Positions 5,410-58,497 of a stretch of 64,000 nt of DNA are shown here, in pieces (position 1 is the stretch's first letter; every line of letters starts with the position of its first letter). The stretch comes from Anthoceros angustus. Its lineage: Eukaryota > Plantae > Anthocerotophyta. The translations under genes and the position numbers were made by a program. Below the pieces are notes generated by a model. That model was given only the letters and a program-made list of their open reading frames with translations. It did not search any database and was not told the origin of the DNA. The DNA is taken from contig MU008158.1 of the NCBI GenBank assembly GCA_010909165.1, positions 3,614,809 to 3,678,808 on the forward strand. Reading direction: 5' to 3'.

Positions 5410-5781
5410 GCCCAGAGGGATAACTGCCGTGCGCCGGGCTCTGTTCTTCTGCTCGAGCGGGAGCAGGAACAGGCCTCGACACTCGTCTTGGAGCCGCTTC
5501 ATCAGATCCAACGGCACGCCGTGGTCCACCACATTGAAGAAGCCCCAATCCCGTGCTGCTTCCAGCACCTGCTGCCGCAACCTGGACCTGGAATCGCACT
5601 CAGCATTGCTCTTTTGGAGCTCGGAGAAGGAGATGGTGGGTATGTCAACGGCATCGTCCTTGAAATCGTTGTATGCAAGGGAAGGCCACTCGTCGGGGCT
5701 GAAGTGGTAGTCCTTCAATTCTCGATTTCCCGAAAGAAATATGGAGAAAGGCTTTCCGTTATCACCCAATGGTGGAGCCAT
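4516..5781 (-). CDS. 2-oxoglutarate/Fe(II)-dependent dioxygenase, DOXC class (GA-oxidase-like); exons 5781-5282, 5176-4852, 4761-4516; ~356 aa
   Basis: ATG at 5781 and two GT-AG introns; the spliced length of 1071 nt is in frame. Motifs: DIOX_N (IPTIS...AARDWGFFNVVDHGV), LPWVEN, HSD and distal H (iron ligands), NIGDTLQ|AWTN, and RLS (RxS). Confidence 0.93.
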
Positions 5782-15849: not shown

Positions 15850-15975
15850 ATCACGTGTCATAGCCAATTCCCTTCTGAATATCCTTTAATGCGTGTGTGA
15901 GAGAAAATATGATAGCCTCGCACTCACATAAGAGCATAAGCTCTTCATCCGTGGTGTGCCCGCATGCCTCACAGC
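15850..15975 (-). other. PHD-finger-like domain at the integrase C-terminus
   Basis: With 2-3 small indel corrections it reads CEACGHTTDEELMLLCE.C..GYHIF.....EGNWL(C)DT(C), matching the C4-H-C3 PHD pattern and the PxGxW signature. Confidence 0.7.
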
Positions 15976-22230: not shown

Positions 22231-22973
22231 ATGAGACAAGTTGTAGGGACAAGTATGGCGCCTTTCCATTCGGACAAACATCTACAATCCAAGAATCCAT
22301 GGTGGCGCCCACATATATAGGCAAAACCCGGAGTTCTCGATGAAGTGCCTCCTCGTTCTCGATGGTAGGCACTTTAGGTATATTATAATCCTACTTTCCT
22401 TGGCCTTGAATAAATAATAATGTTTATGAGTTCAACCATCTATTCGCCTTTTCCTTGATTTACGATTTTTATGTGTTTTCAATATAGTTCCGATGCCTAT
22501 ATATGCATGCCACCGCTACATACATAACCATGTATATAGATTGCATGTGTCATGACACATCGTCTTAACATGTCCACATACATCACATGTCATCCATCCG
22601 TCATGCATACATACCATGTGCATGCCATCCATGGGCGATGCACATGCCATCACATGCACTTCTGCATCCAAATCAAGTGGCTTATGCCAAATGGGATGCC
22701 AACCGCCTCGGAGCCGTGGTTTCACTGCCTGGCCTCCACAACATAAGATGACAAGCTCAAAAATCTCCACCGCAATTTCTCCTATATATCCCTCTTGATA
22801 CAAGCCAAGCCCTGGCTTGGAGAATTGCTGCTTCACCCAGCTCATGCAAGATCTCCCTTGCACTAGGAAATTCCCTTTGTGTCCCTAGAAATTCCTAAAC
22901 CCTTATGCCACCTTAGCTAGCCTTGCTACCTGCTTCCCTTGCTGGTGTGTGCTCATAAATCAACACCCTTCTC

Positions 22974-23134
22974 TGGAGAAAACGAGCGGAGGCAAAGGAA
23001 TAGCAGAAGCATAAAACAGAATAATAAAATGAGAATACAAAATTGTTTAAATACTTTCTACGTGACTGTTCATATAGCAACCCTAGATAGCTTAACCTGT
23101 GTGTTAGGTTTAACTAAATCACTTATTCTTAACA
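22974..23134 (-). repeat. 3' LTR of element A
   Basis: 161 bp direct repeat of 42009-42169, preceded on the minus strand by the PPT. Confidence 0.95.
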
Positions 23135-26038
23135 CCCCCTCTTAAACTAATGTGGACTACGGACTTCCCTGGGGGGTTAGAAAATAGGTAGGGTTTTGTT
23201 TTTTTTGTAGGAGTGAAGGATAAAATGAGGCGAAAAAGGGGAAATAAGATGATAGCACTCCTGACAAGACGAGCATATACTCCGGACCGGAGTGAGGAAC
23301 GCATCTGACCTACTATGGTAGGCGCCACTTAAGGGCGGGTCCGGACCCACTCACCTGTGACCGTGGATAAGTACGCCAAGGAAAGTAACTCAGAGTTGAG
23401 CCGCGGAACGCGGACCAGCGACGCCACGGGCAACCCCGAGTGGAGAATCTGCATGCACCGGCCAGATCAGAATCCTGCCGTGAGGTCAAGTATAGTATTC
23501 ACGCCACATCGCGCTGCGAAGACCGAGCACACGCCATGAAGGCCGTGAGTAAGCGGAGGCGTAAGGTCGCTTGCCATGCACTGCGCTACTTGATGGAAGA
23601 GGCGCCCCGCCCAGGTTACTCCCAAGGAGCGGCCAAGGCTCACGCAGCCTCGAGACAATTTCGCGATCTCGCGCCCGCAACCGCCTCGCGGTATCTCGTG
23701 GGACACTCGACGCCCGCGGCTCACCGCTGAGGCCTGAGCCGAACGCGAAGAAGGCGAACGCTGGTCTCCAAGCGTGCCACAAAGAACCAAGGAAGGAGAA
23801 GGCGATGGCACCCAAAAAGCCTGCGGAAGTTTGGGAGCCATGGAACCTTGTGGAGCGCAACATTGTGACTCGGCGCTATCCGGACTTTGGGCCCTGGCTC
23901 CAGGAAGCAGGAGAATTGGTGCAGGAGTGGCATTTGGATGTGTTCCAGATGGTCTGGACGTTCGATAGTGTCACTCTGGTCCGGGAGTTCGCCCGGAAAA
24001 TGCTGGCGGCGGTCAATAAGGAGGTGCGGTCCAAGAACCTCCGGGAGGACCCAAGGCGATGGACCTTGGAGGTCCTGAGGGCGGCCTACAACCGCCCAAA
24101 GGAGGAAGAGGGGGAGTGGTGCCGGAGCCCCTCAAGGCGGAAGATAGGGCCAGCCACGGCGATCGGGGCCGGCGGACCACTGCGGTTGGGCGATATCCGA
24201 CTGTTAGACGATCGAGTAAGGGCGGTGGCGGATCATTGTCCATCGGAACCTACTCACCAAGGTGGATCACCTTGGTGATAACTGCTGGTATTCCCCGCAT
24301 GCGCTGGAAGAGGGCGACTGGGAAGGATTATTTTCGCCGCTTAGCCAGAGGCTCGCAAGCTCAGACCGAGAAGCCTCGCCATCTGGCCGCCCCCATACCC
24401 GATCCATGTATGGGGGTTTCGAACTCCTCAAGGAAGGAGAGCTTGAGAGAGCACTGAAGGATTGGAGGCCCCTGCGAAGTGGAGCTGCAAGGCGCCGAGG
24501 GAGGCCGATCGTCAAAGCCATCCGGAAGAGGGCCGGTAGGAGGATTTAGGACTCCCGTCGTGCGAACGGACCCCTCACCACCTGTGAAGTATGGGAAGAA
24601 ATTCCTTCCCTCCTCCGGTGCCCCAACCCAGGCGGCCTCAGCGAGGCGGCCCCACCCCAGCCGGCCAGCCAGCCACCACTGAGGAGCCCCAGACCGGGAG
24701 GGCCGAGACGCAAGACCACGGCACCAGCGCGGCACCTCGGCCTGCGGACCCCCACACCTTGCGGGCAAGAAGCGGAGAAGCAGTGGGAGGCGAGAAGGGC
24801 CTGCTGAGGAGGCCGGAGGACAACGCCCCGAGCCGGGTCCTTCAGCCGGGAAGGGGCAAAAAGGCTTGCTCCCGGACTCCCTCACCTCCTCCGAGCCCCA
24901 GGAGAAAAAGGGCGGAGAAGGAGCTCGCGGCCAAAAGGGCCAAGGAGGGTGAAGCTCCGGAGCTCAGCACTCAGGACCTAAGGGTCCTGATTAGGTCCGG
25001 AGAACCCAGTCCGGACTTACTCCGGACAGCGGTATGGAGGTCCTTGGCGGACCGTGAGATGCCGGCTCCCGCTACGGACTTTGTGGGAGCCTCACTGGCG
25101 TGGAAGAACACTGGCCAGTCCACAGCGTCATGGACGGTATGCTCTGGGGTCTCTGTGGGATGGCCGAAGACCCGAGGAGGTAGAAGCCACCGAGGCGCAT
25201 GGTACTCCTCCGGGAGGCAGTTGGAGGGGAGGAAGAAGGAAGGCCAAGCTCTCGGCCGGATTGAGGGAAACGCCGAGGTCGAGAGGAGGTCCGTCCATCC
25301 GGGACGGACCAAATTCCTTCACCGGAGGAGCGACTAATGTAATAGATGTGTTGGAGTCATGATTAGGGTTGTATTAATTGGGTTTAGTTAAAGCTATACA
25401 TGACCGCTCATTAGGGTTACGTCGCTTGAGAAAGCGTTATGTCTTTTCACATTTAGTTTAAGTTGTCTTTTCATGCATAAGCACTTTAACCCCTTTCTTG
25501 ATATACAATGTAATTACTTAATGATGTGATTTATTTCTACATAATCTATATAATATTGTTATGGTATCGAGCTTACTTTGTAGAATGCATCTAGGAAGAT
25601 GCGCATTGAAATTCTGCACTAGAAAATGTGCACGAATTTATCTTCTTTAGTCTTCCTATTTTGAAAATGAGTTCAAAAGAAAGAAACAAGAAGATTTTCA
25701 AGAAAATAGTTTCTGATATTTTCTTTTAGAAAAATCTAACACAAAATGCTGCTGAATCAGGCAGATTTTCTAATGCATTTCCATTAAATTGTCAGTTTAG
25801 ACAATTCCATGCAGATGCACTAGAACAACTGCCTAATAGGCAGATTAGTGTATATGATTTATATAAAAGGATCTCTATAATGCAGAAATTCTGCATTTTA
25901 GATATAACAATCCTGGCTCAAGGCCATGGCAAATTATATCTCTTGCTCCCGGAAAATCCTAGGGGAACAACAATCCTAGGCGTAATCGACAGTCATGTGA
26001 TTTACCCTTGCCAATCAATTACATGTGTGTGTCCAACA

Positions 26039-26567
26039 ATGGAGCCACTGTGGACTCAACCGGCAAACAGAGACAATCAAGGAGCATTCAACACACTACT
26101 TGAATTGCCCAATAACTCGACGACATTCACGGAGAGGAGCGTTGTACAAAATCAACCACTTCTGAAATTGTACACCAACTTCCTCACGATCGGCTGCACA
26201 ATCAACCAGGTAAACACAATTGTTCGGCGTCTTGAAACTAACAATAGGAATGTTGAAAATAGATTCAACCAAATTTGGTCATGTTTCGCACTAGTATCGA
26301 TTTGCGGATTTAAAAGAAGACTTGCATATAGATTACAAACTTGTAATGCTATTAAAACCCGAGTTGCTGTCTAACCCAGCATTCAGAGGTACTGCCTGCA
26401 AGCACGTAAGTAAAACAAATCGTGAAAGGAAGTTTGACTCACCAAATTCTTGCCCTTCATGTTCAACTTACGTCTATAACAAATATGAGATGAGAAGTGC
26501 TAGGATAGCAGCACGCAGAATTGCATGGGATCAAACCTTGCAACGTCAAAACCAACATGCACTGTAA
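26039..26567 (+). CDS. ORF-Y: unknown ORF between the PBS and gag of copia B (frameshift near 26370)
   Basis: In-frame ATG at 26039 within ORF 25880-26374 (MEPLWTQPANRD...VNTIVRRLETNNRNVENRFNQI). It lies in a 1.1 kb leader ahead of gag. Confidence 0.4.
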
Positions 26568-26665
26568 GTAATAATGAATGGAACGATCAGAAAGTGATCT
26601 AGACGATTTTGGAAACGCCTTCAATAAAGCAGTCGAATCACATAGAAGAGCTCTATACCCGTAAC

Positions 26666-29600
26666 ATGGGTGATACACCTTGTCTTCTAACTTTGGTAGT
26701 AGTGAATCCTTCAAAGAAAAGGAGTTCAACAGGCAATGACTTTGATATCCGCTCATCCGGATGGAGGTGTTCTCGAGATGAGAGGCCTCCTTAAATATGC
26801 AACCGAAATGTAGAGTATCCCGCGAAGGGATATCGAAGCAGTTATTGGTTAGCTAAAGACAGCGAGCCAAGTACCTCATACGCATGGCTAACATCCAAAA
26901 TGTTGAGGCGTCTGGGTGAAGACTTCAGAAATCCTAACTCGCCTCAAGGAACTCTGAGGCGTAACATGGTCGTGCAATGAGCTTACGAAACTTCCAAAAT
27001 TTGAGAATGAAGGATGGGGACTCGTGAAAAGCACGTGAGTACCTTCAGGACCCTAGCTTCAAGGCTTGGTGCCTCCAAAGTCACCATAGGAGACGCGAAA
27101 TGGTGATGAGACTCCTTCTTTCTCTTCCAATCGTGGTCACACTTTGTGACTTCACATATCCCGATGCATAGTGCTACATTGTTAGCCAAGAAACAAGGTG
27201 TGGAAATGCCGAGATGAGCTTTTCACAGGTGAGCTCAATGCTTCAAGAGGAAGCAAGCAAGACCAACTATAGGCGTGCGAAGCAACAGCCTCATACATCC
27301 AACCAAGGACGAGGAGGTAGAAGAACCTTCTCAAAGGGTGGTAGCAGCAGTAATTTCAAGGGTGCTGGCCAACAGGGAACCAACACTCCATACAAGAAAA
27401 CCAAAAAGGCATGTACTTGTAACTGGTGCAAGTTACTTGGCCATTGGGAACGTGAGTGTCGTAAGAAGCAGGCTGGAGTTCCTCGCAAGGAGGGATCTTC
27501 AGCTGAGACACACGTTGTGGTTAAGAAGCAAAATACTCATACGCCTTCATGGAACAAGGGAGTTTGCAAGTCCACTTCTGCTACCCACATGCTTGTCTGC
27601 CAAAGCATATTTTAAACCCACTGCTGAGTGGTATCTCGACACAGGAGCCACAGCTCATATTTGCTTTGACAGAAACGCATTCTTAACATACAGGCCACTT
27701 GTTGACCAGTATGTGTATCTTGGAGACGATAGGTCTCTTGTCTCCTGGTCGAGGTACTGTAGACTTGCCAGTTCCTACTGGACTAACCCTCAAATTGCAG
27801 GATGTCTACTATGTACCTGACATGACAAGAAACCTCATCTCAGTTAGAAGATCAGCATAATAGCAGCCATGTGCTATTTACTAGAATGTGTCCGATTATA
27901 GATGCATTTGACCATAGGAAGGTACTTGCATATGGGTCTTGGACCATGACTGTTGCTCCATTTGAATAGTGGAATAGTTGAGTCCCACGACACAGGATGT
28001 CTCCAAGGCATCAGACACAGAGATAAATCTCGTTGTGGCATGCCCGCTTAGGTCATCCACACATGGCAAAGCCGCAAAGTTAGCATTAGTGACCTTTACA
28101 GGATGGACCCATTGGTCCCTTGACCTCAATTCCATTATGTGAGGCTTGTGTTCTTTCTAAGAGACATCAAGCACCTTCAAAAATCGTGCCCCTCACCGCA
28201 AGTGATCTTCTTGAACTTGTCCATACAGAGTGTGGACCTCTGTCCTGTGATTCAATTGGTGGAGGAAAATATTTCCTCACATTCACCGATGACAAGAGCA
28301 GATTTGTCACAACATACATCCTGAAACAGAAGAGCGAGTGTTTCTCCTACTTCAAGGAGTATATCAAGTTTCGATGGACGAGGAAGCGGTGAAAACCTTA
28401 AGATCGATAATGGTGGGGAATTCACATCACATGAATTCCAGGCCTATTGCAAGGATGAAGGAATAGGTAGGCGCTCACGCTTGTCTACACTCCACGCGAG
28501 CAGGGTGGCGGGCGTCTCAACCTCACATTGCGGAAAATGACCTCCTCTTTGCTCCATGACGCAAACCCTTGCCATATTGTGAGGCCCTTATGACTTCAAC
28601 TTACCTACGCAATGTTACCTACTTAATGGACAGACCCCATATGAGGTGTTCAGGAAGGAAGCCATCTCTTAAACATTTAAGGACCTTTGGTTGCCTTGCC
28701 TACGCCTTTATCCCTAAAGAGAAGCGGAAGAAGCTTTGACAAAGCTAGAAAGCTACTCATGCTGGGATATACAGAGGGCATAAAAGCATACAAACCTGTA
28801 TGATGTTCCCACCAACAAAGTTATTTATGCTGAGTGTTACCTTTAATGAGGCACGCACTTGGGCTTCGTGGGAGCAGAAGCATCCTCCAACAGATGACGA
28901 TACGGATGACATCTCGATCCTCATTTTGATCTTCCGACCATGGCACTCGGTCTAGCTCCCCTTGAGAATATTGCTCGCTGGTGGGGAATATGCAACAGAG
29001 CAAGCTCTAGATGACGCAGCCACTATGCCCGCATACCATCATACAGATCAATTTCCTCGACAACATGATACACAACTCGATGCCGCTCAACTGACCCAGT
29101 TGATCAATGATGACACGCTTGAGGACATACCGATGAACCCGATGAAGCACCTCGAGCGAACTCGTCCGATATCCTACTCGTGATGAAGACCCCGATTATT
29201 ATTGTGCCTGACTTGAACTTCTTCCCATAATGTGAGGGTCAATGCTGCAAGCTCTCTTGATCCCATAGAACCTCAAACCTATGCTGAGGCGTTGACTAGA
29301 CCTGATCACAAAGAGTGGGAGAGAGCCATACAGTTAGAATATGACTCGCTCATAGAAAATGGCACATGGGAGATAGCAAAATTACCCCCTGGAAGAATGG
29401 TGTCTTGTAAATGGGTCTTCAAATTAAAGGTGAAAGCTGATGGTACCTTTGACAGGTACAAAGCTAGGCTAGTAGCAAGAGGATTCTCACAGATTCCTGG
29501 ACTTGATTACCAAGAGACCTTTGCTCCCGTTGTAAAGCTAGCCACACTTCGTGTCCTCCTTGCAGTATCAACATACAATGATTATGAACTGCAAATGTAT

Positions 29601-30760
29601 GACGTGAAAACAGCCTTCTTGCATGGAAAGCTGGACACAGAGATATACATGCAGCAACCTCCTGGATTTGAGGTGAAAGGGAAAGAGGACCATGTATGCA
29701 GACTTATCAAGTCTCTGTATGGTCTTAAACAATCTGCTATGAAGTGGAATGTAGAGTTGGACTCAGAACTCCAAGCCCTAGATTTCACCAAAAGCCTTGC
29801 ACGTAGCCTCTACATTTCTGAAAAGAAGATGTAATCACACAGCGGTATCGTTGACGACTTGATTCTCGCTAAATGACGAGGACTTTATTAAGAAGATAAC
29901 AGACATGCTCGCTAAGAGATTCAAAATGTCCAGATCTTGGACCTTTACATAGCCTTGGTATACACATACAAAGAAATAGGCGGCTAGGATTATGACGCTT
30001 ACACAGCCTAGATATCTCCTAGAAAGTGCAGAGCAACCTGGCCTCAAGGATGCCAAACTGCGCAACACCCATGCCCAGTGGATCGAGGCTTAGCAAGCTC
30101 ATGTCCCTTCAACACAAGAAGAAAAGGAACATATGAGGGAATTCCTTACAGTGTGGTGTTAAGTTGATATATGCTTCAAACACAACAAGGTTAGAAGTTG
30201 CCTACACCACAAGCGATTTCTAATTCTTGGAGAATCCAGTCAAGAACATCGGACTAGTTTGAAACGTGTCTCCGATACCTAAAAGGCACATGAACATGGG
30301 CATCGACATACAAACATGAGAAGGAAAACCCCTAGACCTCAAGTCTGACTGACTATGCAGTGATATTGATGAAAATCATCTGCTATGTCATATCGATTCT
30401 TGGAGGACCAGTTGGTCGAGCAAAAAATCGTGGCTTTATCTCGATCAAGCAGAGTATAGAGTCCGACTTGACTAAAGAAATTGTGTGGTGCAAGTTACTC
30501 TTCCAGGACTTGGTATACCAATTCCCACCAGATGAATTAACACACAATCGTGGTTCCATGTCACTTGCTAAGAACCCGTGTTTCATGCACACGAAACATG
30601 TGGAGGTCGAATACCACTACATCGAGGTCCGGTGACAACAGGAAAATTGAGCAATATGTACCGACTCAAGACAATCCTGGACATGTTTACCAAGGCTCTC
30701 ACCGAGAGCTCCACAACAAACATGTTCGAGTTTGGGGCTTGGGGACTCAAGCGAGTTCTT
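26666..30760 (+). pseudogene. Copia B gag-pol (gag, knuckle, protease, integrase, RT, RNase H); many apparent frameshifts
   Basis: CNWCKLLGHWEREC (27418-27459), WYLDTGATAHIC (~27630), WHARLGH-like, GGKYFLTFTDDKSRF, RT 29232-29834 (YKARLVARGF, DVKTAFLHG, SLYGLKQS), HTKHVEVEYHYI (~30590). Confidence 0.92.
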
Positions 30761-32099
30761 GACCTCAACTACCAACAAGGTCTAATCCAAGCAAACCTAA
30801 AAACCAGTCAAACTAGGATCCGAGGAGTAGCAAATCAATTTCCAGATCAGAAGACTCGAGGCGATTCATCCTCATATGAATCTTTTCCAGTAAGCTAACG
30901 ATGAGAAGCTCTCATCGGACCTTGGAGAATTACGTTTCTCGCTCTTCATAGGAAATCCTCTCGCTTCAAGGTCTTCCTCTTCTTCAATCCTCAAGTTGGA
31001 ACCTTCGGAGACAGTGGGAGTAGTTAGCAAGATGGCTAAGGCTTGGTCAAGATAAATGGAAACACGCAGATGTAAACCGAAAGGGACTTACGATATATGC
31101 TTACAACGTGCCACAGGTAGGCGCGCGACAGAACGCACATCAACACGTTCATGATGATCTCGACTCTTCCATAGTCAGGTCTTGTACCAGTGCTTGAGGA
31201 CGAGCAAGAGTTGCATAACTCACCGGTTTAGTCTCTGTAGATAATCGTTGGGCCTAGGAAATTTGGAGGCGGTGAGGGCGAGCTTCATCTTGAGAATCGG
31301 TACTCACCTGAACGGATGCTTCTTCACGGACTTGTCACCGCGGCTCTTCTTTCTCTAAGATGCCATTGGTTCCCTTGGGCGTCCTCTTCCTCTCTTTGCC
31401 GGCTTTGAATGAGCTCACTTGGGCATTGTTCTTGCAAAGAATCGCCCGGGCGTCACGAGGTTGAGCTCGGCGCTTGAGAGCGAGCCGGACTCGGCGAGGC
31501 GGAGACATGGTGGCGCACGATCTTGCTCCTAGCACCTCGAGAGTAAGAGACTAAGTATGCCATTAAGAGGAAGGCGCACCTCATTTGTGCCGTCTTCTTC
31601 ACGGAACAAGGCATCTTGCTCGATACATGGCTGGGCGAATCCATAAGAGAAGCGGGCTATGGCGCTAGAAGAATCAATACACCGGTGAACTCCCACGGCA
31701 CCGCAGAGGCTCGGAGGATCACAATCTGAAATCATGATCAACAAGTGGGAGTAATGAATAGATGTGTTGGAGTCATGATTAGGGTTGTATTAATTGGGTT
31801 TAGTTAAAGCTATAGTACATGACCGCTCATTAGGGTTACGCTTGAGAAACGTTATGTCTTTTCACATTTAGTTTAAGTTGTCTTTTCATGCATAAGCACT
31901 TTAACCCCTTTCTTGATATACAATGTAATTACTTAATGATGTGATTTATTTCTACATAATCTATATAATATTGTTACAATTGGCAGCCAAGGAGGCCCAA
32001 GGCGGAGGCGGCAGGAGTTGGAGCAGGAGGCGGAGGCGGCAGGAGGCGGAGGCGCCCGCGAAGCGTAATCGGGCGCGGACCGGTGAGGCACTGACCGAC

Positions 32100-33085
32100 C
32101 AGAGCCAAGCCGAGAGGCTCGAAGGTGGCCAAGGAGGCGGAGGCCACGGCGGCCGATCGCGATCACTATGCGATCGAACCGGTGGAGGGAGGCGGCCGAG
32201 AGCCACGCCAATCAAGGCCGAGCAAGTGAGCAAGCACGAGCTGCAAACACCGAGGCCAAGACCCGGAAATGGGACCCTGCATGCAGGAGGTAGAAGGGAG
32301 GCGGCAGGAGTTGGAGGACAAGAAGGACACCTTGAGTTACAACCCAAGACGCTGGCTTGGAGCAAGGAATTCTCAATGGGAGAATCCAGACTTCGAGCAG
32401 AGATAGAGCGCCCCCTCCTCAAGATGGAGCAGGAGGTGGCGGAGCAAGCACGACCAGCCCAGGCCAAGAAGTTCGAGGATGGAGGACCTCCACTCACCCG
32501 GAGGTGGAGCAGCGGCGAGATGGAGGACCGAAGGAGACTTTGAGCCGCAGCCCAAACTATCATTGAGAGGAATGGTAGTTCCAGGACATGGTCGCGAACG
32601 CGACCGGAAATAGAGCGGCTCCGCCCGCTGGCGACTGAGCCGCAGAAGGCGATCGCGATCACTATCAGGCGTGAGGGAGGCGGCAGGAGGCGGAGGTGGA
32701 GCAACAAGGCGGGTGGCGGCCAGACAAGCAGGCCGCGGCTGCACAGAGGCCACCTGGAAATGGGACCTCGGGCCTTGTTGCAGGAGGTAGAAGGCGGCAG
32801 GAGTTGGAGGGCAAGGACACCTTGAGTTACAACCCAAGACGCTGGGCCAGCAATTCTCAATGGGAGAATCAGGACTTGACGAGATAGCGCCTCCAGCTCA
32901 CAAGATGGAGCAGGAGGTGGCGGAGCAAGCACGACCAGCCGGGGGCCAAGAAGTTCATGACGAGATGGAGGACCTCCGGACTCACTCGGGAGGTGGAAAA
33001 GCGGCCGGGAGATGGAGGACCGCAAGGAGACTTTGAGCCGGCTCAAACTATCATTGAGAGGAATGGTAGTGCAAGGACATGGTCA
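32100..33085. repeat. Noisy tandem duplication of ~0.49 kb inside ORF-Z2
   Basis: AAGGACACCTTGAGTTACAACCCAAGACGCTGG occurs at ~32323 and ~32813; AAACTATCATTGAGAGGAATGGTAGT at ~32554 and ~33045. Confidence 0.8.
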
Positions 33086-34953
33086 GGCAGCGGCAAAATC
33101 GGCGGCTCCGGCTCTGCGTGGCGGGATGGCGATGGAGCAGGAGGCGGGGCGTCGAGATGGAGAAAGAAGCCTGCAGCCTGGCGACCGTCTGGAGCGGAGA
33201 TGGCGGAGTTAAGCATAATGGACAAGAGGCGAGGGCGCCGGAAGCGTGAAGCCGTCCACCGAGGAAGTCGGAAGGAACGCCGCTATGGCGTCAAGGAACC
33301 AAGCGAGGAGTTGGAGCAGGGAGCAACCGACGGAGGTGACCGAGGCACTGGCACTCGAGAAGCAGCCCCAGCCTATCAAACTTGGCGGGAGGTGGAGCAA
33401 CAAGGCAATGTGCTCAGCCTCCCGAGCACCTATGGCGAAGGGAGTACGGTGCTCAAGACGTGGAAGAGGCAATCCAAAGAAGTGGATTCGGACTTTGCCT
33501 ATTACCACACCGAGCTCCTCAAGGCTGAGGCCTCTACCGCCACGCAGACGGACCGAAGGCCTGAGGGGAAGAAGGGCACGGGATGACAGACCCTAGGGGC
33601 CCTGCTTGGAGACGACACAAGGAGAGGAGCCCCAAGAGGAGCGGACGCAGGACCCCAAGGTAAGTTCACCACCACCCGATCCGGCCAAGGGGTGAGGGCC
33701 CGCAGGGGTGCAAGGGAGCCAACCCAACCAAGACAAGGGCTCGGGGTAAGGAGGAGGACCAAAGACGAGGTCCACGGGAAGGGGGTCCGAGTTTGGGGAT
33801 CGGACTGAATAAGTACGGACCCCGAGGTCCGAACCCCGAGACGAGGGCCCACCGGCCTGACTGGAAATAAGCCGGACCCTTGGAGTTCAGTTCGAGTCGA
33901 GACCGACTCGAGGTCCGGACCAAGAAGGAGGAGCCCCTTCGACTTACGCTAGGGAGCAGACAATGGTGGCCCCACCGGAGGGGACCCACGGAAGGCTGTG
34001 AGGATGACGCACCACCGCCGACCACGCAGAGCTAGCCCAACCCGGCTGTGATTCCGGAGAAAGGAGGTCTACCGGATCATCCGATTGCGCGCCGAATTGT
34101 CGTATGAGATTGGACCACCAATCCCAAGGCGGAACGGGACCTTCCCACACCGCGGGAGATAGGGGAAGGAAATAGGATGGTAGGCGGCCGATTAGGCATA
34201 CCGAAATGGGCCGTCACCGTAATAGGGGTGTAATAAAGACGACCGGGCGTAGTATAAGAGGGTCCGCCTCAATAAATCATCTTTTCCTTGGTGTTGATGC
34301 CGCTCTGCGCACCTTGTGTGTCTTCTTGATAACGTGAGTCCCGAGTCACCGAAAGGTGCACGATACCGGAGGGATCGATCGTGGTCCCGTGACGGACCTA
34401 ACGTGTTGTGGTGTGCAGAAGGGTGATCGGGGACCCGTGCTCGCCCGTAGCCGCGCCCACGAACGGACCGAACGTGTGAGCCGGAGGGACTTCGGAGGGG
34501 CGGCCTGGACGGAGAGGCCCGTGGAACGGAGGAGGTCCTGATGTAACCCGCCTTCCTTAAGACCGATAAGTGTAGTGTGAGTGGAGAGAGGAGGAGAGAG
34601 ACGAACGGAACGAAACGGACGCGAACGGGTCCTTAAACGCTTAGCCATACCGCGGTGTTTGTCGTGAGTAGTTAGGCGTGAACTAAGGTGTGTGTAGGAC
34701 CGAGCGGACGAAAGTAAGACGAGAATCACGAACGCAGAACGGAGTCCGCTATTCCTTTGGGAACGAACTCCTTCCTACAACGACACGGGATTGTGCGCGC
34801 CCGGCTGGCCGTCAGCAAAAGTCGCGCCACAACTAAACACAGTAAGCCTAGATGACCTTCACGTAAAAAATCATTAACGCAGAAAACCACGAGGAGGTGC
34901 TGCGCGCGAGGAGAAGGCCACCACGAGGCTCGAATGCAAGCTCAGTACACGGT

Positions 34954-36638
34954 TGTTGGGAGTCAATCATCCATCTCGAGTCCTGGATAGGAATCCCGCC
35001 AGCTCTTAAGGATGGCCACCCACGCTGTCGCCCTCTCACGCAAACCCACTTCACGCTTGCCTCGCATCCGGCTACTAAGCTTTGATCATGGTGACACGGA
35101 GAGGAATTGATTACTTGGTCAGAATCTGAATGTAAGCAGGCGGCAGGCGCAGCCCACATTAACCGCCACGAGCTCGGCATCCACGCAGGAGGAGCCAAGC
35201 ACGGAGCGGTCATGGGAGGGGCGCCACTGCACCGGCCAGCGCAGGAGGCTATCACGTGGAGCTCAACATTACACTGGTCTAGGGACGTGTGCGAGAAGGA
35301 GAAGAGATAAAGCTGCCCAAGGAGTCTTTAGGAGCAGAAGGTGAAGAAAGCCTCGTCAAGCAGCTGGAGAAAGCTGCAACCTTGCTGGAATTCCTGAAGA
35401 AGAAGCAATCAAGAGTAGGCCGTGAAGGAGGCGCCTAGGCGATTAGGTAGAAAGTTTTGCTTCATCCGGCCGGTCCTTCTAGCTCTTGTATATTCACTGT
35501 CCGATCCGACACTCATTTGTGTGTGCTTGTGTAATCGGACGCTGTGGGAGCATACATCATAAAATCTGGAAGCACGGCTTCCACCCCCCCCATACCCAGA
35601 TAAGGGCACATCACTGGTCAAAATAGGCAGAAAAATCGTGTAGTCCTAGGCCTTCCATGTGTATGTAATGCTTAGGTTTAGGCAGTCCCTTGGTCAAGAT
35701 ATCTGCTGTATTCCCGTCTATCGGGATGTAATCAACCTTGACAATCTCTCGTTCCACAACATCTCGTAGAAAATGTTGAATTTCATATGCTTTGTTGGGA
35801 GTCAATCATCCATCTCGAGTCCTGGATAGGAATCCCGCCAGCTCTTAAGGATGGCCACCCACGTTGCTGCCCTCATTGCGCAAACCCAGCTCTTCACGTT
35901 TGCCTGCATCCAGCTACTAAGCTTTCTGATCATGGTGACACGGAGAGGAATTGATTACTGCCGGTAATCAAGAATCGGCAAGGGCGCAGGCGCACCCACA
36001 CACCACGAGCCCCATCCACGCAGGAGGAGCCAAGCACTGAGCTGGCAGGGGCGCCACTGCACCGGCCAGCGCAGGAGGCTATCACGTGGAGCTCAACATT
36101 ACACCGGGTCTAGGGACGTGTAGAAGGAGAAGAGATAAAGCTGCCCAAGGAGTCTTTAGGAGCAGAAGGTGAAAGCTCCAAGTACTGGAGAAAGCTGCAA
36201 CCTTGCTGGAATTCCTGAAGAAGAAGCAGTCTGAAGAGTAGGGCTGCTGTGAAGGAGGCAGCTAGGCGATTAGGTAGAAAGTTTTGCTTCATCCGCCTGC
36301 TGGTCCTTCTAGCTCTTGTATATTCAGCCTGTCTGATCTGATTACCTGCTCATTTGTGTGTGCTTGTGCAGAACCTGGACGCCAGGGCGTGGGGAGCATA
36401 CATCATAAAATCTGGAAGCACGGCTTCCACCCCCCCCATACCCAGATAAGGGCACATCACTGGTCAAAATAGGCAGAAAAATCGTGTAGTCCTAGGCCTT
36501 CCATGTGTATGTAATGCTTAGGTTTAAAGTCGGTCAAGATATCTCACGATTCTGCCCATCGGGATGTAATCAACCTTGACAATCTCTCGTTCCACAACAT
36601 CTCGTATGTAGTGGTGTTGAATTTCAATATGCTTTGTT
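34954..36638. repeat. Tandem duplication of ~0.84 kb (LTR-like segment, PPT and RNase H tail): 34954-35792 and 35793-36634
   Basis: TGTTGGGAGTCAATCATCCATCTCGAG occurs at 34954 and 35793; GGCTTCCA plus a C-run at ~35583 and 36429. The junction has TGTT microhomology. Confidence 0.88.
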
Positions 36639-39600
36639 CGGGGATGATATTTGGGCTTGGCCACTAATTCCAGTGCACCTGTATTATCACAGAGGATAAG
36701 GGTAGGCTGGAGCTCCTTCTCGTCGAGGTCAGCGAGGAAGGTTCTCTCCCACTCAGCTTCCTTAGAGGCCTCGGCCACGATTTGTACTGATTGGTCATTG
36801 AGGGATATGGAAGCTTTGTTTGCGCCCAGTCGTTACAAGATTGGCCACAGAAACAATAGGTTGAAAGATCACGGAGTCGGAATGCGGCCCAATCTACATC
36901 CGTGAACCCTGTAAGTGTAAGCCTAGAATGTCCGCTTCGTCTGTACATAAGCCCATAACGAATTGTGCCCTTTAGGTAACGAAATATGCGTTTGACAGCT
37001 ACCCAATGGGGCCTGCCAGGATTCTTGAGAAACTGTGAGACAGTGCTCACTGAATATTGGATGTCTGGCCTGGTCCAGTTGGCCACAAAAATCAAACTAC
37101 CGACAGCATGTCGATAAGGTACATCAGCCATGTCCGTTTTGTCAGCTTGTGTTTCAGGGCACTGTTCTCGCGTGAGCTTGACTCCTGTTGCATATGGTGT
37201 AGCTGCTGGGCGTGCTTGGTCCAGGTGAAACTTGCGCAAAATCTCATTAACATACTTGAATTGGTGGATGTACATGAGGCCCTCGGAGCGGACTCGCAGC
37301 AACTGGATGCCAAGACAGAACTTGAGCTCACCGATATCCTTCATGTCGAACTTACTGGAGAGCTTGGCCTTGACATCTGATAGCAGCTTCTGATCATTTG
37401 TGGCAAAGATCACATCATCCACATAAAGGGCGAGAAGGACAAGAGAAGAGCCACGGGTAAGCTTGTAAACATTCGTGTCCGCTACACTCTGTACAAAGTC
37501 GATGCTGATTAAGTAGAGATGCATGGTTAAATACCACACTCTCCCACTCTGTTTCAAGCCATATATACACTTCAAGAGCTTGAGCACTTTGTCTGGATGT
37601 GCAGGGTCTTCATAAGCTTTAGGCTGGAGCATGTAAAGTTCCTCATCTAAAGCTCCATACAAGAACGTTGTACCGACGTCCATCTGGTGTAAGTCAAGGT
37701 CATGTTCTGTGGCATAAGCGAGGAGGATTCGAATGGATTGTGTTCTCACGATAGGTGAGAACGTTTCTTGGTAGTCCAAACCCTCTACTTGCGTGAACCC
37801 TCGTGCAACCAATCTAGCTTTGAATCTAGCCACCTCACCTTTGGCATTTAACTTGAGTTTGAAAACCCATTTGCAGGAGATGGCCTTGCGCCCTGGTGGA
37901 AGATCTGTCAGTGTCCAGGTCTTATTTTTCACAAGAGACTGGTACTCATCCTCGACAGCAGCTTTCCATTGTTCACATTCATGCCCATTGAAGGCATGCT
38001 GTAGGCTAATAGGCTCATCCGGCAGAGAGGTCTTAACTGCGAGGTTGGTCCTAAAGTCCACAGATTGGTATCTAGGCTCTGCCCATTCAGAAGGAGGTGG
38101 ACGATAGCGAGTTGAGCGTCTAGGCTCAAAAACAAGTGGTTCCTCTACTGGTTCATTGACAAACAGGTCCAGGTCATAAGCAAGGTCCGGCAGCCCCTCA
38201 TGGTCCCGGATGTAAGCCATCAACCGTAGAATCGTCCTACCCATCATCCTCGTTTCTTGAGGCTCGCTGTATACAACTTGTGCATCGATCATTCGACCGC
38301 TGGGTCACTGCAAGCTCCATCAGACGAGCTCCACAGTGCTTCGGTTGAAGGTATGATAGGTGGTATTTCAACCAGTTCCATGTCATCCAAGGGAGATTCA
38401 GCTGGATCAGCTGATGTGACATCATCGTCATCTGCTGTCATGGGTAGAAGATCTTGTGTTGTACTAGAGGCTGGTGAATTAGTGTCACACTTCGAGCAAG
38501 CAGCATACAGTCTTGTAGTGGGTTGTATAGTCTATAGGCTTTCACATGCTCACTATAACCACAAAAATCAGTCCTTGAGCACGAGGTTCCAGCTTCCTTC
38601 GTTTTTTAACGGGGATATATGCGAATGCACGTGAGCCAAATACCCTTAGATGTAACAAGCTAGGTCTCCTGTTCCAGAACACGTCACATGGTGTCTTTTG
38701 TGGGACAGAGCTCGTGAGAACCCTGTTCAAGATGTATGTGGCTGTTACAATTGCCTCAGCCCAATATCCTTGTGGTAAGCCTGCCCAAATAAGCATGCTT
38801 CTAGTCATACCGAGCAACGTCTGATTTTTCCTCTCAGATACACCGTTCTGTTGTGGTGTGTAGGGAACTGTTAGCTGGCGAAGGATGCCATGTCCCTGGA
38901 GCAGCTCATCAAAAGATGAGTTTACAAACTCCGACCCATTGTCTGTCCTTAGTATTTTAAGAAGCATGCCACATTGCCTTTGAGCTGTAAAGAGCCAGTC
39001 TCTAAAAATGCTGAAGGTATCACTTTTAAGCTGCAATGGGAACGTCCATGTGTATCTGCTGAAGTCGTCAGTTAGGGTAAAGAAATAATGAGATCCTCCC
39101 AAGGACGGCTCATGTATCCTTCCAGATATATCAGCATGAACTAATTCCAGCACTTGTGTGGCTCTGTGTGCAGGGGTACTGGGGAATGGAGATTCCTTTT
39201 GCTTTGCTAAGATGCAAGATTCACAGACAGGTAAGTCCTTGAAACATTTCGGCAAAGGTTCTCTATGACATTCAGTAACAGACATGTCAATCAGCTTAGA
39301 TCTATTGACGTGACCTAACCTAGCATGCCACAAGACTACCTCCTGCTTAGAACTAAGCAACTGTGTGGCAGTGGAATGTGTAGCGTGCTTGGAAACAGGT
39401 GGCTGGCTACATACTATGTTCAACCTGTAAAGGTCGTGATCTAGTATGCCTTTGAAGACACATTTTTCAGGATATGCCTTCCTGTAGAACGAACAGTGGT
39501 TGAAGTCAGCACGCATACAAAAGGTACGTGATTGCATCAGCCTACTCATGGACATGAGGTTCTTGGCCATGCTGGGTACATACAACACATCTTCTAACGT

Positions 39601-40793
39601 GAGATCTGTGTTGTCATGCAGTCTGAAGACACAAGTGCCTTTGCCTTCTATGTGCAAACTGGACTTACTTTGCTCATCACCTAGCAGCACCTTGTCATGG
39701 ACATGCACAAGGTCTAGGGTGGAGAACAACTCCCTGTCCTTACAGATGTGTGTTGTAGCTCCAGAGTCAAGATACCAACAGCCATCATCGTGAAGAGAAC
39801 TTGACAAGCAAACGGTAAGGATTTTTACTGGTGCCTTGTCAACATTCTCGCTTTTACAACGCTGGCACGCGCTTCAGGGCTCACCCGCCTATGCTTATGT
39901 GCACTCGTGCCTGGGCTGGGGAGTTCCACACCAATTGCGTGCTAACGCTTGTTGGAGGTGACCCATCGACCGTAAGAGCTTCCACCTTGGTTTCCCCCTC
40001 TGAATTTAGACTTGCCTTTAGGAGATCTAAAATTCACAGCCAAGGCCTTCTCGGGCCGTGCTGCTTTAGAAACAGCAGAGCCATGAAGCAGCCTTGCTTG
40101 CTCTTCCTGGTAGAGTGCTCCAATCACTTCCTAAATAGTGGGGGCGTTGGCAGCAGCTGCACCTAGTTTGATGGAGGCATTTTGGCTGGTGATGAAATTT
40201 TGGTATGAAGGAGGGAGGCTGATAAGCAACTGGGACACAGCTTCGACTTCAAGCATCTTGTGGCCAGTCAACGACGTGATCTGGGCTATCAACTGCCGAA
40301 ACTTGCTTGTGTGAGTTGCTATCTTCTCTCCTTCCTTCATTTTCAACGAGTAGAATTGCATCATGACGGCTGATAGTGACATCATATTTGTGGAGTGGTA
40401 GGTGGTCTCCAATTGATCCCATATTTCCTTGGCCAATGTCAAGAATTCAACATCAGGGACAAGGTCTGCAGTAAGAGGATTGATGAGCAAAGCCATGGCC
40501 ACACTATTGTGGTACTCCCACTTAGCGTATTCATCCGGCTTGGTTTTGGGCTCAGGCTTCTGAAAACTCCCATCAACACTTGTCCATACACCTCTAGCAA
40601 CAAGGACAGCCTTCATGCGGACTCTCCAGACCTGGTAACCAGTCCCACTGAAGCGGTCCTTGCCTTGGACATCTGATGTGTAAGATGTAGAAGAGGCAGC
40701 CATGATGGGTGGTTGAAGTGGTGGGTTTGCAGGTTGTAACGTGAGATTATTGAAGTTATCAATGAGGGCGTTCAGCTGGGCTTCAACGGACAT
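36457..40793 (-). pseudogene. Copia gag-pol with few frameshifts (ORFs of 220, 421 and 542 aa)
   Basis: gag (YQVWRVRMKAVL), WYLDSGATTHIC, LWHARLGH, integrase (LVHAD, LRTDNGSEF, PQQNGVSERKN), RT (ARLVARGFTQ, LYVDD), RNase H (RTKHIEIQHHYIR). Confidence 0.95.
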
Positions 40794-41254
40794 GAAAAAC
40801 TAAACGATTAAGAAGAACTATGGTTTCTTCTAATACAGCTAAGTTTTCATTCACGCACCACACTTAGATTTGCAGAAAACACTAACCAATACATGCAGGA
40901 ATGGGGTGCTGGGCTGCTCAGCTGGAAAGGGTGCTAGCCAAGAATGCTAGGATCAGCTCCTGCTGAGCTCCACAGCATGTCGATCGTGCATGCCTGGCGT
41001 GAAAAGTCGTGTCCATGCCTGCAAACCCTAACTTGGATAACGGTTCATAAGAAACCTTGTTGAAAAATTAGGTTAAGGGCAAGAAACTAACCGTCATGAC
41101 TGTCTACTGAAGTGACAGGTACAAGTGGACCAATGTGCGCTGAAGAATGCTGTCTAATCAAGGGGTGCAAGGGGAAGAATGCACCGATTCATATCAGGAT
41201 GTAGGAGGAGCACTCCTGCGCCTGTGTGGCCCCCGCTCAGCAGCAGCGGAAGAT

Positions 41255-41962
41255 TCACAATGCTCGAACAATCGAGCTTGATCCTAAATGAGAGCAGCCC
41301 TGTTCTCGCTCACGAAGCCTCAAGTCCATCAATTTCAGAAAATCAGATACGTTATTGATGTCTCTTGAGATTTGTTGTGTGCTCTCAGCGACTGCTTGTT
41401 CAATTTCAGGATTTCGTGTCGGAACTCTGTTCTTCAAAAATTCCTGGTTTGTAATTACGTGTGATAACAATTGTAGAACTTTGATTAGAAGAGATTCTAT
41501 CCTTATGTCGAACCCTCTTCCAAAATCAGTGCAGGGGCTAACGCTGTCTCCGGCCTGTGATGTTGCAGGCTGTTGCTTTGTGGCTGATTTATTAGGAATA
41601 TGTAGCGAAGGATGTAATGCATCAACAATAGGCGCTCTCAGAAAATCTGCTAGACTAGATGTTTCTGATCTAGGAGAGTAGTACAAATCAGGGTTTTGCC
41701 CTCTCCTATAGCAACGCTCTCTGTAGAGGCGATCAACCTCTCGATTTTTGTTTAAATAAAAATCAGATGCTCCCCTTTTGCTACGTGATTCAACAAACCT
41801 CTGCAACCAATGAATGGGGTAGTTCTGTTCATAGATGTCCAGCACCGTGTCAATATCGAGTTGTGGCGGTGCCGTTTGTCTTGGTGGGAATCTAGCTTGC
41901 TGAGAATGTCTCGAGATCCCACCACGACACGGACGTCTAGATGAACCACCCCGTCTCGGCAT
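41255..41962 (-). CDS. ORF-X: unknown 235 aa ORF 33 bp after the PBS of element A; Arg/Gly-rich N-terminus, helical C-terminus; apparently truncated by the copia core
   Basis: Clean ORF MPRRGGSSRRPCRGG...; its TGA stop (41257-41255) lies inside the first bases of the LTR-like TGTGAA at 41259. Confidence 0.65.
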   Translation of the reverse strand: MPRRGGSSRRPCRGGISRHSQQARFPPRQTAPPQLDIDTVLDIYEQNYPIHWLQRFVESRSKRGASDFYLNKNREVDRLYRERCYRRGQNPDLYYSPRSETSSLADFLRAPIVDALHPSLHIPNKSATKQQPATSQAGDSVSPCTDFGRGFDIRIESLLIKVLQLLSHVITNQEFLKNRVPTRNPEIEQAVAESTQQISRDINNVSDFLKLMDLRLREREQGCSHLGSSSIVRAL

Positions 41963-42008
41963 CTTCCAGGAATTGCATTAGGAAACAGAGCATGGCTGTG
42001 ATACCATG

Positions 42009-42169
42009 TGGAGAAAACGAGCGGAGGCAAAGGAATAGCAGAAGCATAAAACAGAATAATAAAATGAGAATACAAAATTGTTTAAATACTTTCTATGTGA
42101 CTGTTCATATAGCAACCCTAGATAGCTTAACCTGTGTGTTAGGTTTAACTAAATCACTTATTCTTAACA
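42009..42169 (-). repeat. 5' LTR of element A
   Basis: Followed on the minus strand by 2 nt and the iMet PBS; flanked by the TTCTC TSD. Confidence 0.95.
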
Positions 42170-44546
42170 TTCTCTAGCCTCTCTTTAAGCGTTGAGCTCG
42201 TCCTTGAGCTTGCCTTACACCTTCCCTTGGGCATGCTTCCCCTAAGCGAGGTAGCTCGCCCTCCTCCTCACCTTTCACTACTCACCACAGTGCCCGTCCC
42301 TATTTGGCACCCTTCAAGTTTGTTGCGCCTCCCTAGCGCCTCCTTATTCCTGCTGGCGTCGTTCTTCTAGCGCTGCCGCCTTCCCTCTCTTCTTCACAGG
42401 ATTCCAAAAGCACCACTCGCTCGCACTCGCCTTCCTAGCTCACATGGACTTGTCGCGATGTGGTCATCTGGCTGTCTTATCTTAAATAGGGAACACAAGC
42501 TTGTTAAGGAAAGAGATGGAGGGTGGCCAAGTTGGGAAGGTATGCCCCCAACTGTCACCACCGTTGATGTGTGCCGCATGGCACTATCTCCACCGTTAAA
42601 CTCTTTAAATAGCTCCCCCTGCCAAGTATACTTAGGGCTCCTACTCGACTGCTACTAGGGGTTCTAAATTAATTACTAATTCTCTAGGTATATGCACATA
42701 TATAGCCTAAAAGAATTCTATAAATGGTTCTCTACATGCGTAGGGCAGCGACCTACTTTGGTAGGTCCTCCTACCTACAATCTACGGGTCACGTACCTAC
42801 CCTACCCACTAAACCATTTATTCCTGAGAATCTTCCGAATTCCTACTCTGGTTCCTAACTTTCTTACATGGCTCAACATAAACACTCGTCACTCCTCGTT
42901 GTTCACTTTGAATCAAGATGGAACAAAAATGAACCAAACTGGATCAAATTTACAAAGGGACCCAAACTTTTCCGTTCCACATGGGATTAGCTCGCGAATA
43001 GTCTAAGTGATTTGTATGGCACATGCGAACATCAGGAATACGGGCAATTAGCTGAAGAATATAGCAATGGCAAAAAAATCAAAGGAAACTCAGACAAATA
43101 GCGACGCAAGCACGCCATGGGAACCATGTTATTTATACAATGTCTCATTTTTAGGGCCACCCTTGCTAGCTATCTCAGACTCCTTATCTTTCGTCTTTGC
43201 TGCTCTCTCCCCAATGCAAACTCATCACATCGTGCTTACATGCAGATCTGATCAAGTTTTAGTTTCTTTACCGAACAATTCTTTTGTGGGCTAGTTTATG
43301 ATGTGAATAATTTATATCCAACGCTTAATTTGCTAACATTTATTCATCTTCTATTTGTCATTGTCAGTTTAACCATGCTATTGGAGTCCTTGCAACACTA
43401 AGGCGATTCATGAGCTCTACTGAGGTGATGTACCTTGGGTTATCAAAGTTGATACTTGTTCACAAACAAAAAAGACTATCACCCAATTTGACACTAAATA
43501 CTGAGGATTGTGGCTATGTCAACTACTATAAAGCCAAATTTTGATCTGGATGTACATGTAGCATCATTCGATAAGTCATCATGCTTTGGGGCAACTTTGT
43601 ATACATCGTACAAATGTTGATTCTTTAAGACTTTTACAGTCTTCTACTCCTACAATCATCGTAAAAAATAAAAATTGTAGCTACTCATATTCGTTCTTCA
43701 GGATCATGTGATAATTTGATCTCGATAGTAACATATAAAATAAAAGAGCTTCTCTATAGATTATTTGAAGCTCAAAGATACATCGGCGAATCGTCCAACC
43801 TCACTCCACGTCCAACATTTAGTCAATGTTAGTCCAAACAAGGACATGTTAGAGAGGTTGGGGGTTGTAAGTGGATGAAGCTTACAGTTATAAGTAAACG
43901 TCACTGCCTGCGATATGTTGTGACATGGCTTGATAGGCTCTTTGTGCCCCTTACTCATTTCTTCCATGATTTTCTTCATTGCTTGGGCATGTGTCATCTT
44001 TGTCCTCTCCTTAAGAATCTGTTGTGCACGACGACCTATAGACTTGACTTGGTCATTACTCCCTAATTGTGGCATATGTTTGAACATCTTGTACATTCTC
44101 CTAATGGTGTCGACATCCACAACTATACAAAGTTGGCTTCACATATCTTGCTGTAGTGCAGCCCATATTTTGTCAGTGAAGGTCTTGTAGGGAATTCACT
44201 ACTGTTTTCAATGGACACATTGTAGTCCACGTGAGAGCTTTCTGTTTGGCGAGCTCCAGGTTGCGAGTGTTTGCACGTGTAAGCCGCAGACAAGATTCTA
44301 GAGTAGATGAAGGGCGAGAATGAAAATCAAACCTCCCAGGAAAGCAAGCTCGCATGTAGTGACAACCTCCGCCATAATGCTGTTCTTAAGGCGGTGATTG
44401 AAAAGTGGAGTTTTGCCGCCATTAGCTCTTACAGCAATAGTCGCATGCGAATCTCTTGCTTAATTGTATAGTTTTAGCGTAATCTTTCAGAAAATACATT
44501 TGTTGATCTTTTTCATAATTTCTTTAGCTTCCTAATGAGTTCAACT

Positions 44547-57500: not shown

Positions 57501-57757
57501 GCTACCTATTTTGCGCTTTTGTACCTTGTTTAAACGCGCAAATGTGGAAGTGGATATTTTCTCGATTACTTGATAAAGAGGGTAGAAGTAAGCGGGCGTA
57601 ACACCCTATCTATCGACTGCGGAATATTTGGTGGATTGGTGGTATCAGTGGGAAATGATAGAGGGTGCAGTTCAGTAGTAGTGCGTGCTTCAGTGGTGCA
57701 TCTCTGTGCGCCGGGCTCTTTTTTGCATTCGGCGATCTCGCGCTCCTGAGGACGTCG

Positions 57758-58497
57758 ATGGACCCCGATTCTCTGTCCAAGGCCTTTGTCGAGCACTACT
57801 ACAGCACGTTTGATGTCAACAGGGGGGGCCTCATAGGCCTGTACCAGGACAATTCTATGCTCACCTTTGAGGGCGAGAAGATCATGGGGGCCCAGAACAT
57901 CGCGGCCAAGCTCAACAGCCTGCCCTTTCCTCAGTGCAAGCACACCATCACCACCGTGGACTGCCAGCCCTCGGGCCCCGTCAACGGCATGCTCGTCTTC
58001 GTCAGCGGCTCTTTGATGCTCCCGGGCGAGAGCCACCAGCTCAAATTCAGCCAGGTAACCAGCTCATTCCACACGCCTGCGATTCTGTTAAAATGGGGTT
58101 CCAATCTTCCTGTGCCGTTGCGTCTTGCCTGGGTTTTCTTGTCTGATCTTTATTTGGCTCTTGGCAAACCTATCGGTCCTCCGTGTTAGGGCATCCCGAA
58201 TGAGAGTGGATGTTCCGCTCGATTGCGGAGGCGGTGATTGCGTCCCTGGCCAGTTGCTTAGGGCTTGCGATAACAGCCGTGGTGTCTTGAAAGCCTTATG
58301 CTGGGGTTTTTGGTTGATTGCTGCTGGAAGGCATAGTCTTGTGCTGCTATTGCTGTCCCTTGTATCAGCACTTGACTGCTTCCGCTTTAGGGTTCGATCT
58401 TTGACTGTGCTCTGTTGTGCAGATGTTCCACTTGTTACCTTCCAGTGGAGGAAGTTTCTACGTCCTCAACGATATCTTCCGGCTGAATCTGACGTAG
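57758..58497 (+). CDS. NTF2: Nuclear transport factor 2; exons 57758-58054 and 58423-58497; 123 aa
   Basis: MDPDSLSKAFVEHYYSTFD...LYQDNSMLTFEG...TVDCQPSGP...VFVSG...LKFSQ|MFHLLP...FYVLNDIFRLN, with one GT-AG intron. Confidence 0.95.

Follow-up and report, generated by a model that had tools for sequence, protein, structure and literature searches.

Long terminal repeat (LTR) retrotransposons include non-autonomous elements of the LARD and TRIM types, and a defective copia element that is mobilised in trans is known in BARE-2. Accessory coding sequences of such retrotransposons were catalogued in the REXdb survey of 80 species, which counted extra open reading frames (ORFs; eORFs in that survey) of at least 250 codons lying outside the polyprotein and outside tandem repeats, and which recorded them in 582 Ty1/copia elements, almost all as 3' sense ORFs of SIRE elements (PMC6317226). 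Copia elements in the survey reach sizes of up to about 16 kb, and it is Ogre/Tat gypsy elements that typically combine a 5' ORF with a long tail and antisense ORFs, the figures being 21% for 5' sense ORFs (eORF-5'F) and 60% for antisense ORFs in Ogre, and 86% for antisense ORFs in Retand (PMC6317226). Here we analyse a stretch of 64,000 nucleotides from the hornwort Anthoceros angustus (assembly GCA_010909165.1, contig MU008158.1, positions 3,614,809 to 3,678,808, forward strand), referred to as the window, which contains an LTR retrotransposon, element A, with an ORF upstream of gag (ORF-X) and a second element, copia B, inserted in its 3' tail. Element A is probably a single young, defective and unusually long Ty1/copia element that has a gag-pol of its own, an orphan ORF on its 5' side and copia B nested in it.

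Element A occupies positions 22974-42169 of the window on the minus strand and is 12,554 bp long when copia B is left out. It is arranged in the order LTR, primer binding site (PBS), ORF-X, gag-pol, a GC-rich tail of about 5.2 kb, polypurine tract (PPT) and LTR. The two LTRs are identical at 160 of 161 positions, the sole mismatch being a C/T difference within a CpG (23061/42096), and they have TG...CA ends and a perfect 5-bp target site duplication (TSD), TTCTC, as is usual for Ty1/copia elements. The PBS, TGGTATCACAGCCATG, matches 14 of the 16 positions of what we take to be the 3'-end pattern of the initiator methionine tRNA (tRNA-iMet), and no other site in the window comes within three mismatches of the 16-nt pattern. 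On the element's sense strand, the PPT, AAGAGGGGG, is one of only two purine runs that are at least 9 nt long and precede a TG. Because the PBS lies beside the LTR at 42 kb and the PPT beside the LTR at 23 kb, element A is oriented on the minus strand, and the 42-kb LTR is therefore its 5' LTR. Taken together, the LTRs, TSD, PBS and PPT are far beyond chance. The initial annotation had described the same LTR identity, TSD, PBS and PPT and a very recent last insertion, as well as a sense ORF-X, a nested copia B and a copia core oriented like element A, and all of these were recovered when the LTRs were re-measured, the TSD was read directly and the other features were placed on the sequence (Table 1).

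Between ORF-X and the tail, gag-pol stands in its canonical place and in the element's own orientation, and Pfam searches and homologue mapping gave the copia domain order gag-PR-INT-RT-RH (protease, integrase, reverse transcriptase and RNase H following gag) with an RVT_2-type reverse transcriptase (RT). Element A is thus a Ty1/copia element by every structural criterion tested. Its nearest database RT proteins are only 51-56% identical; among metagenome contigs its RT had one match (39% identity, on a 2.7-kb contig), and its integrase had no match among viral contigs. The polyprotein contains one in-frame stop (40133-40131) and at least four frameshifts, lying near 39.9, 38.54, 38.3 and 36.8 kb. 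Intact coding capacity, as autonomy would require, is thus lacking, and this copy is defective.

Element A resembles the Ty1/copia elements with extra ORFs, such as SIRE/Maximus, in its domain order, tRNA-Met PBS and 5-bp TSD, and in having one or more ORFs without conserved domains outside the polyprotein (PMC6317226). Unlike in SIRE/Maximus, its extra sense ORF precedes gag instead of following pol, and the LTRs are only 161 bp long. The sense env-like 3' ORF of SIRE is not evident, the only long sense ORF of the tail (33046->31961, 361 aa) being of low complexity and reached in 22 of 1000 shuffles. With Ogre/Tat, Retand, Grande and RIRE2 the element shares an ORF upstream of gag, a long repeat-bearing stretch between pol and the 3' LTR, and antisense ORFs within that stretch, but its integrase precedes an RT of the RVT_2 type, which puts it in the other superfamily, and it has a tRNA-Met and not an Arg or Lys PBS, very short LTRs and no aRH domain. 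The Ogre-like layout is to be regarded as convergence and not as membership. Like LARD and TRIM elements and BARE-2, this copy combines near-identical LTRs with the absence of an intact gag-pol, which suggests mobilisation in trans; unlike LARD and TRIM elements, it keeps a complete though broken set of gag-pol domains.

The genomic RNA of such an element would run from the 5' LTR through the tRNA-iMet PBS into ORF-X as the first cistron and, after a 461-nt spacer, into gag-PR-IN-RT-RH. It would continue through a tandem duplication of about 845 bp, which takes in the end of pol together with the beginning of the 3' untranslated region, and through the tail to the PPT and the 3' LTR. Recent integration by the usual copia integrase reaction would then have produced the 5-bp TSD.

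The initial annotation had instead read gag-pol as a captured copia core with mismatched LTR-like ends at 41259 and at 34953/34954. At the second of these positions we found the end of the tandem duplication, in which a unit is present twice (36641->35800 and 35799->34953) at 87% identity with many small indels. A microhomology that includes AACA is common to the pol sequence just ahead of the unit, CCCGAACA, and to the unit's end, TCCCAACA. Position 34953/34954 is the end of this microhomology-mediated internal duplication and not an LTR terminus, and its apparent terminal CA belongs to the microhomology. The C-termini of database homologues align to both copies, in copy 2 at 35784->35635; in homologue P0001, copy 1 corresponds to residues 619-705 and copy 2 to residues 684-734. 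The other proposed junction, 41259, falls within the last sense codon of ORF-X, right before its stop. The 461-466 nt between ORF-X and gag have no similarity to the 3' side, even at a word size of 7, and the core is therefore without LTR remnants. Neither a full nor a half tRNA-Met PBS was found in this spacer; a half-tRNA-Met PBS had been considered upstream of gag, where matches occur at chance level only, and element A holds one PBS-like site apart from that of copia B. In all, an independent nested copia would bring LTRs, a TSD, a PBS and a PPT of its own, and the core has none of these at 41259 and 34954. A split repeat layout of the form A...B-A-B was also considered and rejected, the 5' side sharing nothing with the tandem units. 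In both tandem copies a tract of eight G residues (G8) followed by TG lies about 25 nt past the pol stop (minus strand, about 36445-36425 and 35600-35580).

The two copies of the duplication differ by 13%, against 0.6% for the LTRs, and because the first divergence is so much larger, the duplication, and hence gag-pol, was already in the unit that last transposed. With the perfect TSD and the near-identical LTRs, this supports the movement of everything between the outer LTRs, except possibly copia B, as one unit at the last insertion. The earlier claims that the core has no TSD, is older than the insertion of element A and moves on the outer LTRs are thus borne out, whereas its mismatched LTR-like ends have other explanations and a foreign, captured origin is left without hallmarks; the composite reading loses its supporting evidence without being formally refuted. 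Nor does the element answer to a LARD-like description, in which the transposing unit would be free of gag-pol, as gag-pol lies between the LTRs without hallmarks of insertion. In copy 1, the pol C-terminus has clustered deletions that probably predate the insertion of element A, the 13% divergence of the tandem copies suggesting that they are old. Since gag-pol is broken and this damage is apparently old, element A probably depended on intact relatives, acting in trans, for its last jump. Some of the gag-pol lesions could be post-insertional or assembly indels, and a single LTR difference could give only a loose estimate of age.

ORF-X is non-random in length. In 2000 dinucleotide shuffles of the leader (1215 nt), no frame reached its 240 open codons and the longest had 237, so that although it is slightly below the 250-codon threshold of the REXdb survey it is beyond chance. 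Relatives were not found by Pfam, which gave only a sub-threshold LXG match (E 0.004), by word search, by phmmer against 1.84 billion representative proteins, in the ESM Atlas (best score 0.79), or in metagenome or viral loci. Nor is it a diverged gag. A single-sequence AlphaFold (AF2) model is poor, with a predicted local distance difference test score (pLDDT) of 46, but helical, with a long C-terminal helical hairpin. The GC content at third codon positions (GC3) is 0.37 in ORF-X, 0.47-0.55 in gag-pol and 0.63-0.71 in the tail ORFs. ORF-X would encode an accessory protein specific to its lineage, perhaps one that binds nucleic acids or has a regulatory role; given the youth of element A, its intactness alone does not show selection.

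Copia B, which the initial annotation had also placed within element A, belongs to another copia family. The RTs of A and B are 47% identical and stand apart in a quick FastTree phylogeny with weak support. Between its PBS, TGGTATCGAGC, and gag, copia B has a leader ORF whose 214-codon frame was reached in 3 of 2000 shuffles; it has no Pfam domain and is not similar to ORF-X. The two elements share a short LTR, an iMet-type PBS, a leader ORF, a spacer and gag-pol, and that copias as divergent as these both have this layout argues for its belonging to the elements and against a one-off capture. No 5-bp TSD of copia B could be recognised under any plausible LTR boundary (25330-25340, 31972-31985). 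Its LTRs end in TAATG...TGTTA instead of TG...CA, and a plus-strand frame is continuous across the element.

Several observations weigh against the reading of element A as a single copia element. A 12.5-kb copia with 161-bp LTRs is unusual, and no Ty1/copia lineage in the REXdb survey has an appreciable share of 5' sense extra ORFs (PMC6317226). The three GC3 blocks would fit modules of different origin, and the G8 tract with its following TG might be the remnant of a PPT and the beginning of an LTR from a shorter ancestral copia, or might be due to chance. The reading is, moreover, drawn from a single copy of element A. It is rather unlikely that the larger story is either a hornwort copia lineage which independently evolved an Ogre-like plan, with ORF-X as first cistron and an antisense gene in the tail, or the descent of element A from an LTR vehicle which lacked gag-pol and took up the polyprotein of a copia. 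An ancient chimera in the specific sense, the other version in the initial annotation, in which a vehicle without gag-pol, made of LTR, PBS, ORF-X, tail, PPT and LTR, gained a copia gag-pol, by nested insertion followed by LTR loss or by template switching between co-packaged RNAs, and has since been propagated, would account for the three compositional compartments and for the G8 and TG right after pol, which could mark an old PPT/LTR boundary, and would be compatible with the lack of relatives of ORF-X and the tail. We nevertheless consider such a chimera unlikely: the core has no TSD, LTR remnant, PBS or PPT, both of its proposed junctions are otherwise explained, the unrelated copia B has the same leader-ORF layout, so that this is not peculiar to element A, and the acquisition of accessory ORFs by a copia would be just as likely to give a mixed composition.

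The tail, split by copia B into 23135-25334 and 31977-34953, amounts to about 5.2 kb with 61% GC and is purine-rich on the plus strand. It contains an internal repeat (32248-32593 and 32742-33084, 82% identical), and no terminal repeats, terminal inverted repeats (TIRs), bounding repeats or transposable element (TE) domains were found in it. The tail was considered as a third nested element and rejected, since no repeats bound it. Its long ORFs are without Pfam domains, and many ORFs overlap on both strands. The antisense frame Z2, noted in the initial annotation, is present, but its 249 codons do not exceed chance, having been reached in 121 of 1000 shuffles of the surrounding 61% GC sequence. 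When its two parts are joined in frame across copia B by coordinates, the resulting 437 codons were reached in 12 of 1000 whole-region shuffles and in 27 of 1000 shuffles of 300-nt blocks. For the antisense ORF Z1, the AF2 model has a pLDDT of 44, and Pfam, word and Atlas searches returned nothing or only chance-level matches. Compared with chance expectation, the antisense ORFs are borderline at best; an antisense gene in the tail is possible but weakly supported, the tail may be transcribed antisense, and a protein product is only weakly supported. An AT-hook-like RRRGRPIVKAIRKR is present between Z1 and Z2 at 24496-24540 (plus strand, third frame). As a motif of the antisense frames it was rejected, as the RGRP near 24496 is in the third frame and its frequency is roughly what R/G/P-rich translations would give by chance.

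Part of the tail could be second-hand TE sequence. It may be supposed that some of it, within 23135-25334 and 31977-34953, is a truncated, inverted fragment of another element, gained before the last transposition, in which case the antisense ORFs would be that element's sense ORFs. GC content and purine skew shift sharply at the tail, and over 53 aa (32% identity, pairwise E 3e-7) Z1 (at 23955-24107, plus strand) resembles an ORF that follows the integrase, in sense, in the neighbouring gypsy element, the shared motif W..D..LV.E...R.DPR.WT...Y.RP.EE corresponding to no Pfam family. The similarity is confined to those 53 aa and does not extend, including into the neighbouring frame, and the tail is neither bounded by terminal repeats or TIRs nor filled by TE domains, so that we regard this origin as quite improbable.

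That element A is a non-autonomous cargo element, as the initial annotation had proposed in one of its versions, into which a copia inserted after integration, or that the locus is an assembly mis-join, is very improbable: removal of the core and copia B does leave no gag, RT or integrase, as had been noted, and small indels are frequent in the repeats of the window, where assembly quality is not guaranteed, but a fresh copia would show two LTRs and a TSD, of which there are none, their clean loss would have to be fitted into about 0.3% divergence, the outer LTRs and their TSD form a coherent set, and homology is unbroken from pol through the duplication into the tail.

Elsewhere in the window, the neighbouring gypsy element lies on the minus strand, with RVT_1 at 17788-18633, an integrase region at 15886-16419 and the ORF 12514->11951 in sense downstream of the integrase. 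Right downstream of this integrase region are two tandem copies of about 1.15 kb (13041-15323, 75% identical), and a further 1.7-kb tandem duplication, 98.8% identical, is found at 2007-5412 with a long ORF (4862-5599, minus strand) that has no Pfam match. About 15 kb from element A, at 6432-7523 (minus strand), an intron-less ORF of 363 aa with a strong CMAS/SAM-methyltransferase domain (E 1e-44) probably represents a host gene, and a fragmentary ORF at 57665-58189 (plus strand), with an NTF2 domain (E 1e-26), is probably a host-gene exon.

Table 1. Features of element A and of the nested copia B, in window coordinates
Feature	Positions	Strand	Remarks
TSD TTCTC, left	22969-22973		Read directly; equals 42170-42174
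3' LTR of element A, 161 bp	22974-23134	-	TG...CA; 160/161 identity to 42009-42169
PPT AAGAGGGGG	23135-23143	-	Adjoins 3' LTR
Antisense ORF Z1, 235 aa	23571-24278	+	Residues 129-179 weakly like ORF 12514->11951 of neighbouring gypsy
Antisense frame Z2, left part, 249 codons	24588-25334	+	R/G/E/P-rich, low complexity; cut by copia B
Copia B, 6642 bp	25335-31976	+	Nested in tail; gag, IN and RT heavily frameshifted
Copia B LTRs, ~227 bp	25335-25561 and 31752-31976	+	Differ by four small indels and one or two substitutions
Copia B PBS TGGTATCGAGC	25562	+	iMet-type
Copia B leader ORF, 214 codons	25730-26371	+	Sense, between PBS and gag
Antisense frame Z2, right part, 188 codons	31977-32540	+	Same frame as 24588-25334
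Right part of 3' tail	31977-34953	-	Sense strand GC-/pyrimidine-rich; internal repeat spaced ~490 bp
Tandem duplication copy 2	34954-35799	-	Better-preserved pol C-terminus, then ~700 nt untranslated
Tandem duplication copy 1	35800-36641	-	Unit begins inside pol C-terminal coding region; junction microhomology CC(C/G)AACA
RT-RNase H open segment, 546 codons	36667-38304	-	Pfam RVT_2, E 1e-71
Protease-like barrel and integrase open segment, 443 codons	38545-39873	-	Pfam Pol_BBD, gag_pre-integrs, rve, SH3_retrovirus
gag, 222 codons	40134-40799	-	Pfam Retrotran_gag_2, E 1.5e-30; DUF4219; then in-frame stop 40133-40131
ORF-X-to-gag spacer, 461 nt	40794-41254	-	8 ATGs; no PBS or LTR remnant
ORF-X, 235 aa, sense	41255-41962	-	Starts 28 nt past PBS; basic R-rich N-terminus, predicted helical C-terminus
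PBS TGGTATCACAGCCATG, tRNA-iMet type	41991-42006	-	2 nt past 5' LTR
5' LTR of element A	42009-42169	-	Pair of 22974-23134
TSD TTCTC, right	42170-42174		Read directly

If the reading of element A as a single copia element is true, the locus is an ordinary, recent, defective copia with a second copia nested in it, and it provides no evidence that a non-autonomous vehicle captured a polyprotein. The REXdb survey has practically no record of plant Ty1/copia lineages with a sense ORF ahead of gag (PMC6317226). Two unrelated copias in this window have one. The arrangement raises the question of how gag is translated behind a first cistron of 235 codons and a spacer with 8 ATGs, and hornwort copias would be useful for asking what role 5' accessory ORFs have.

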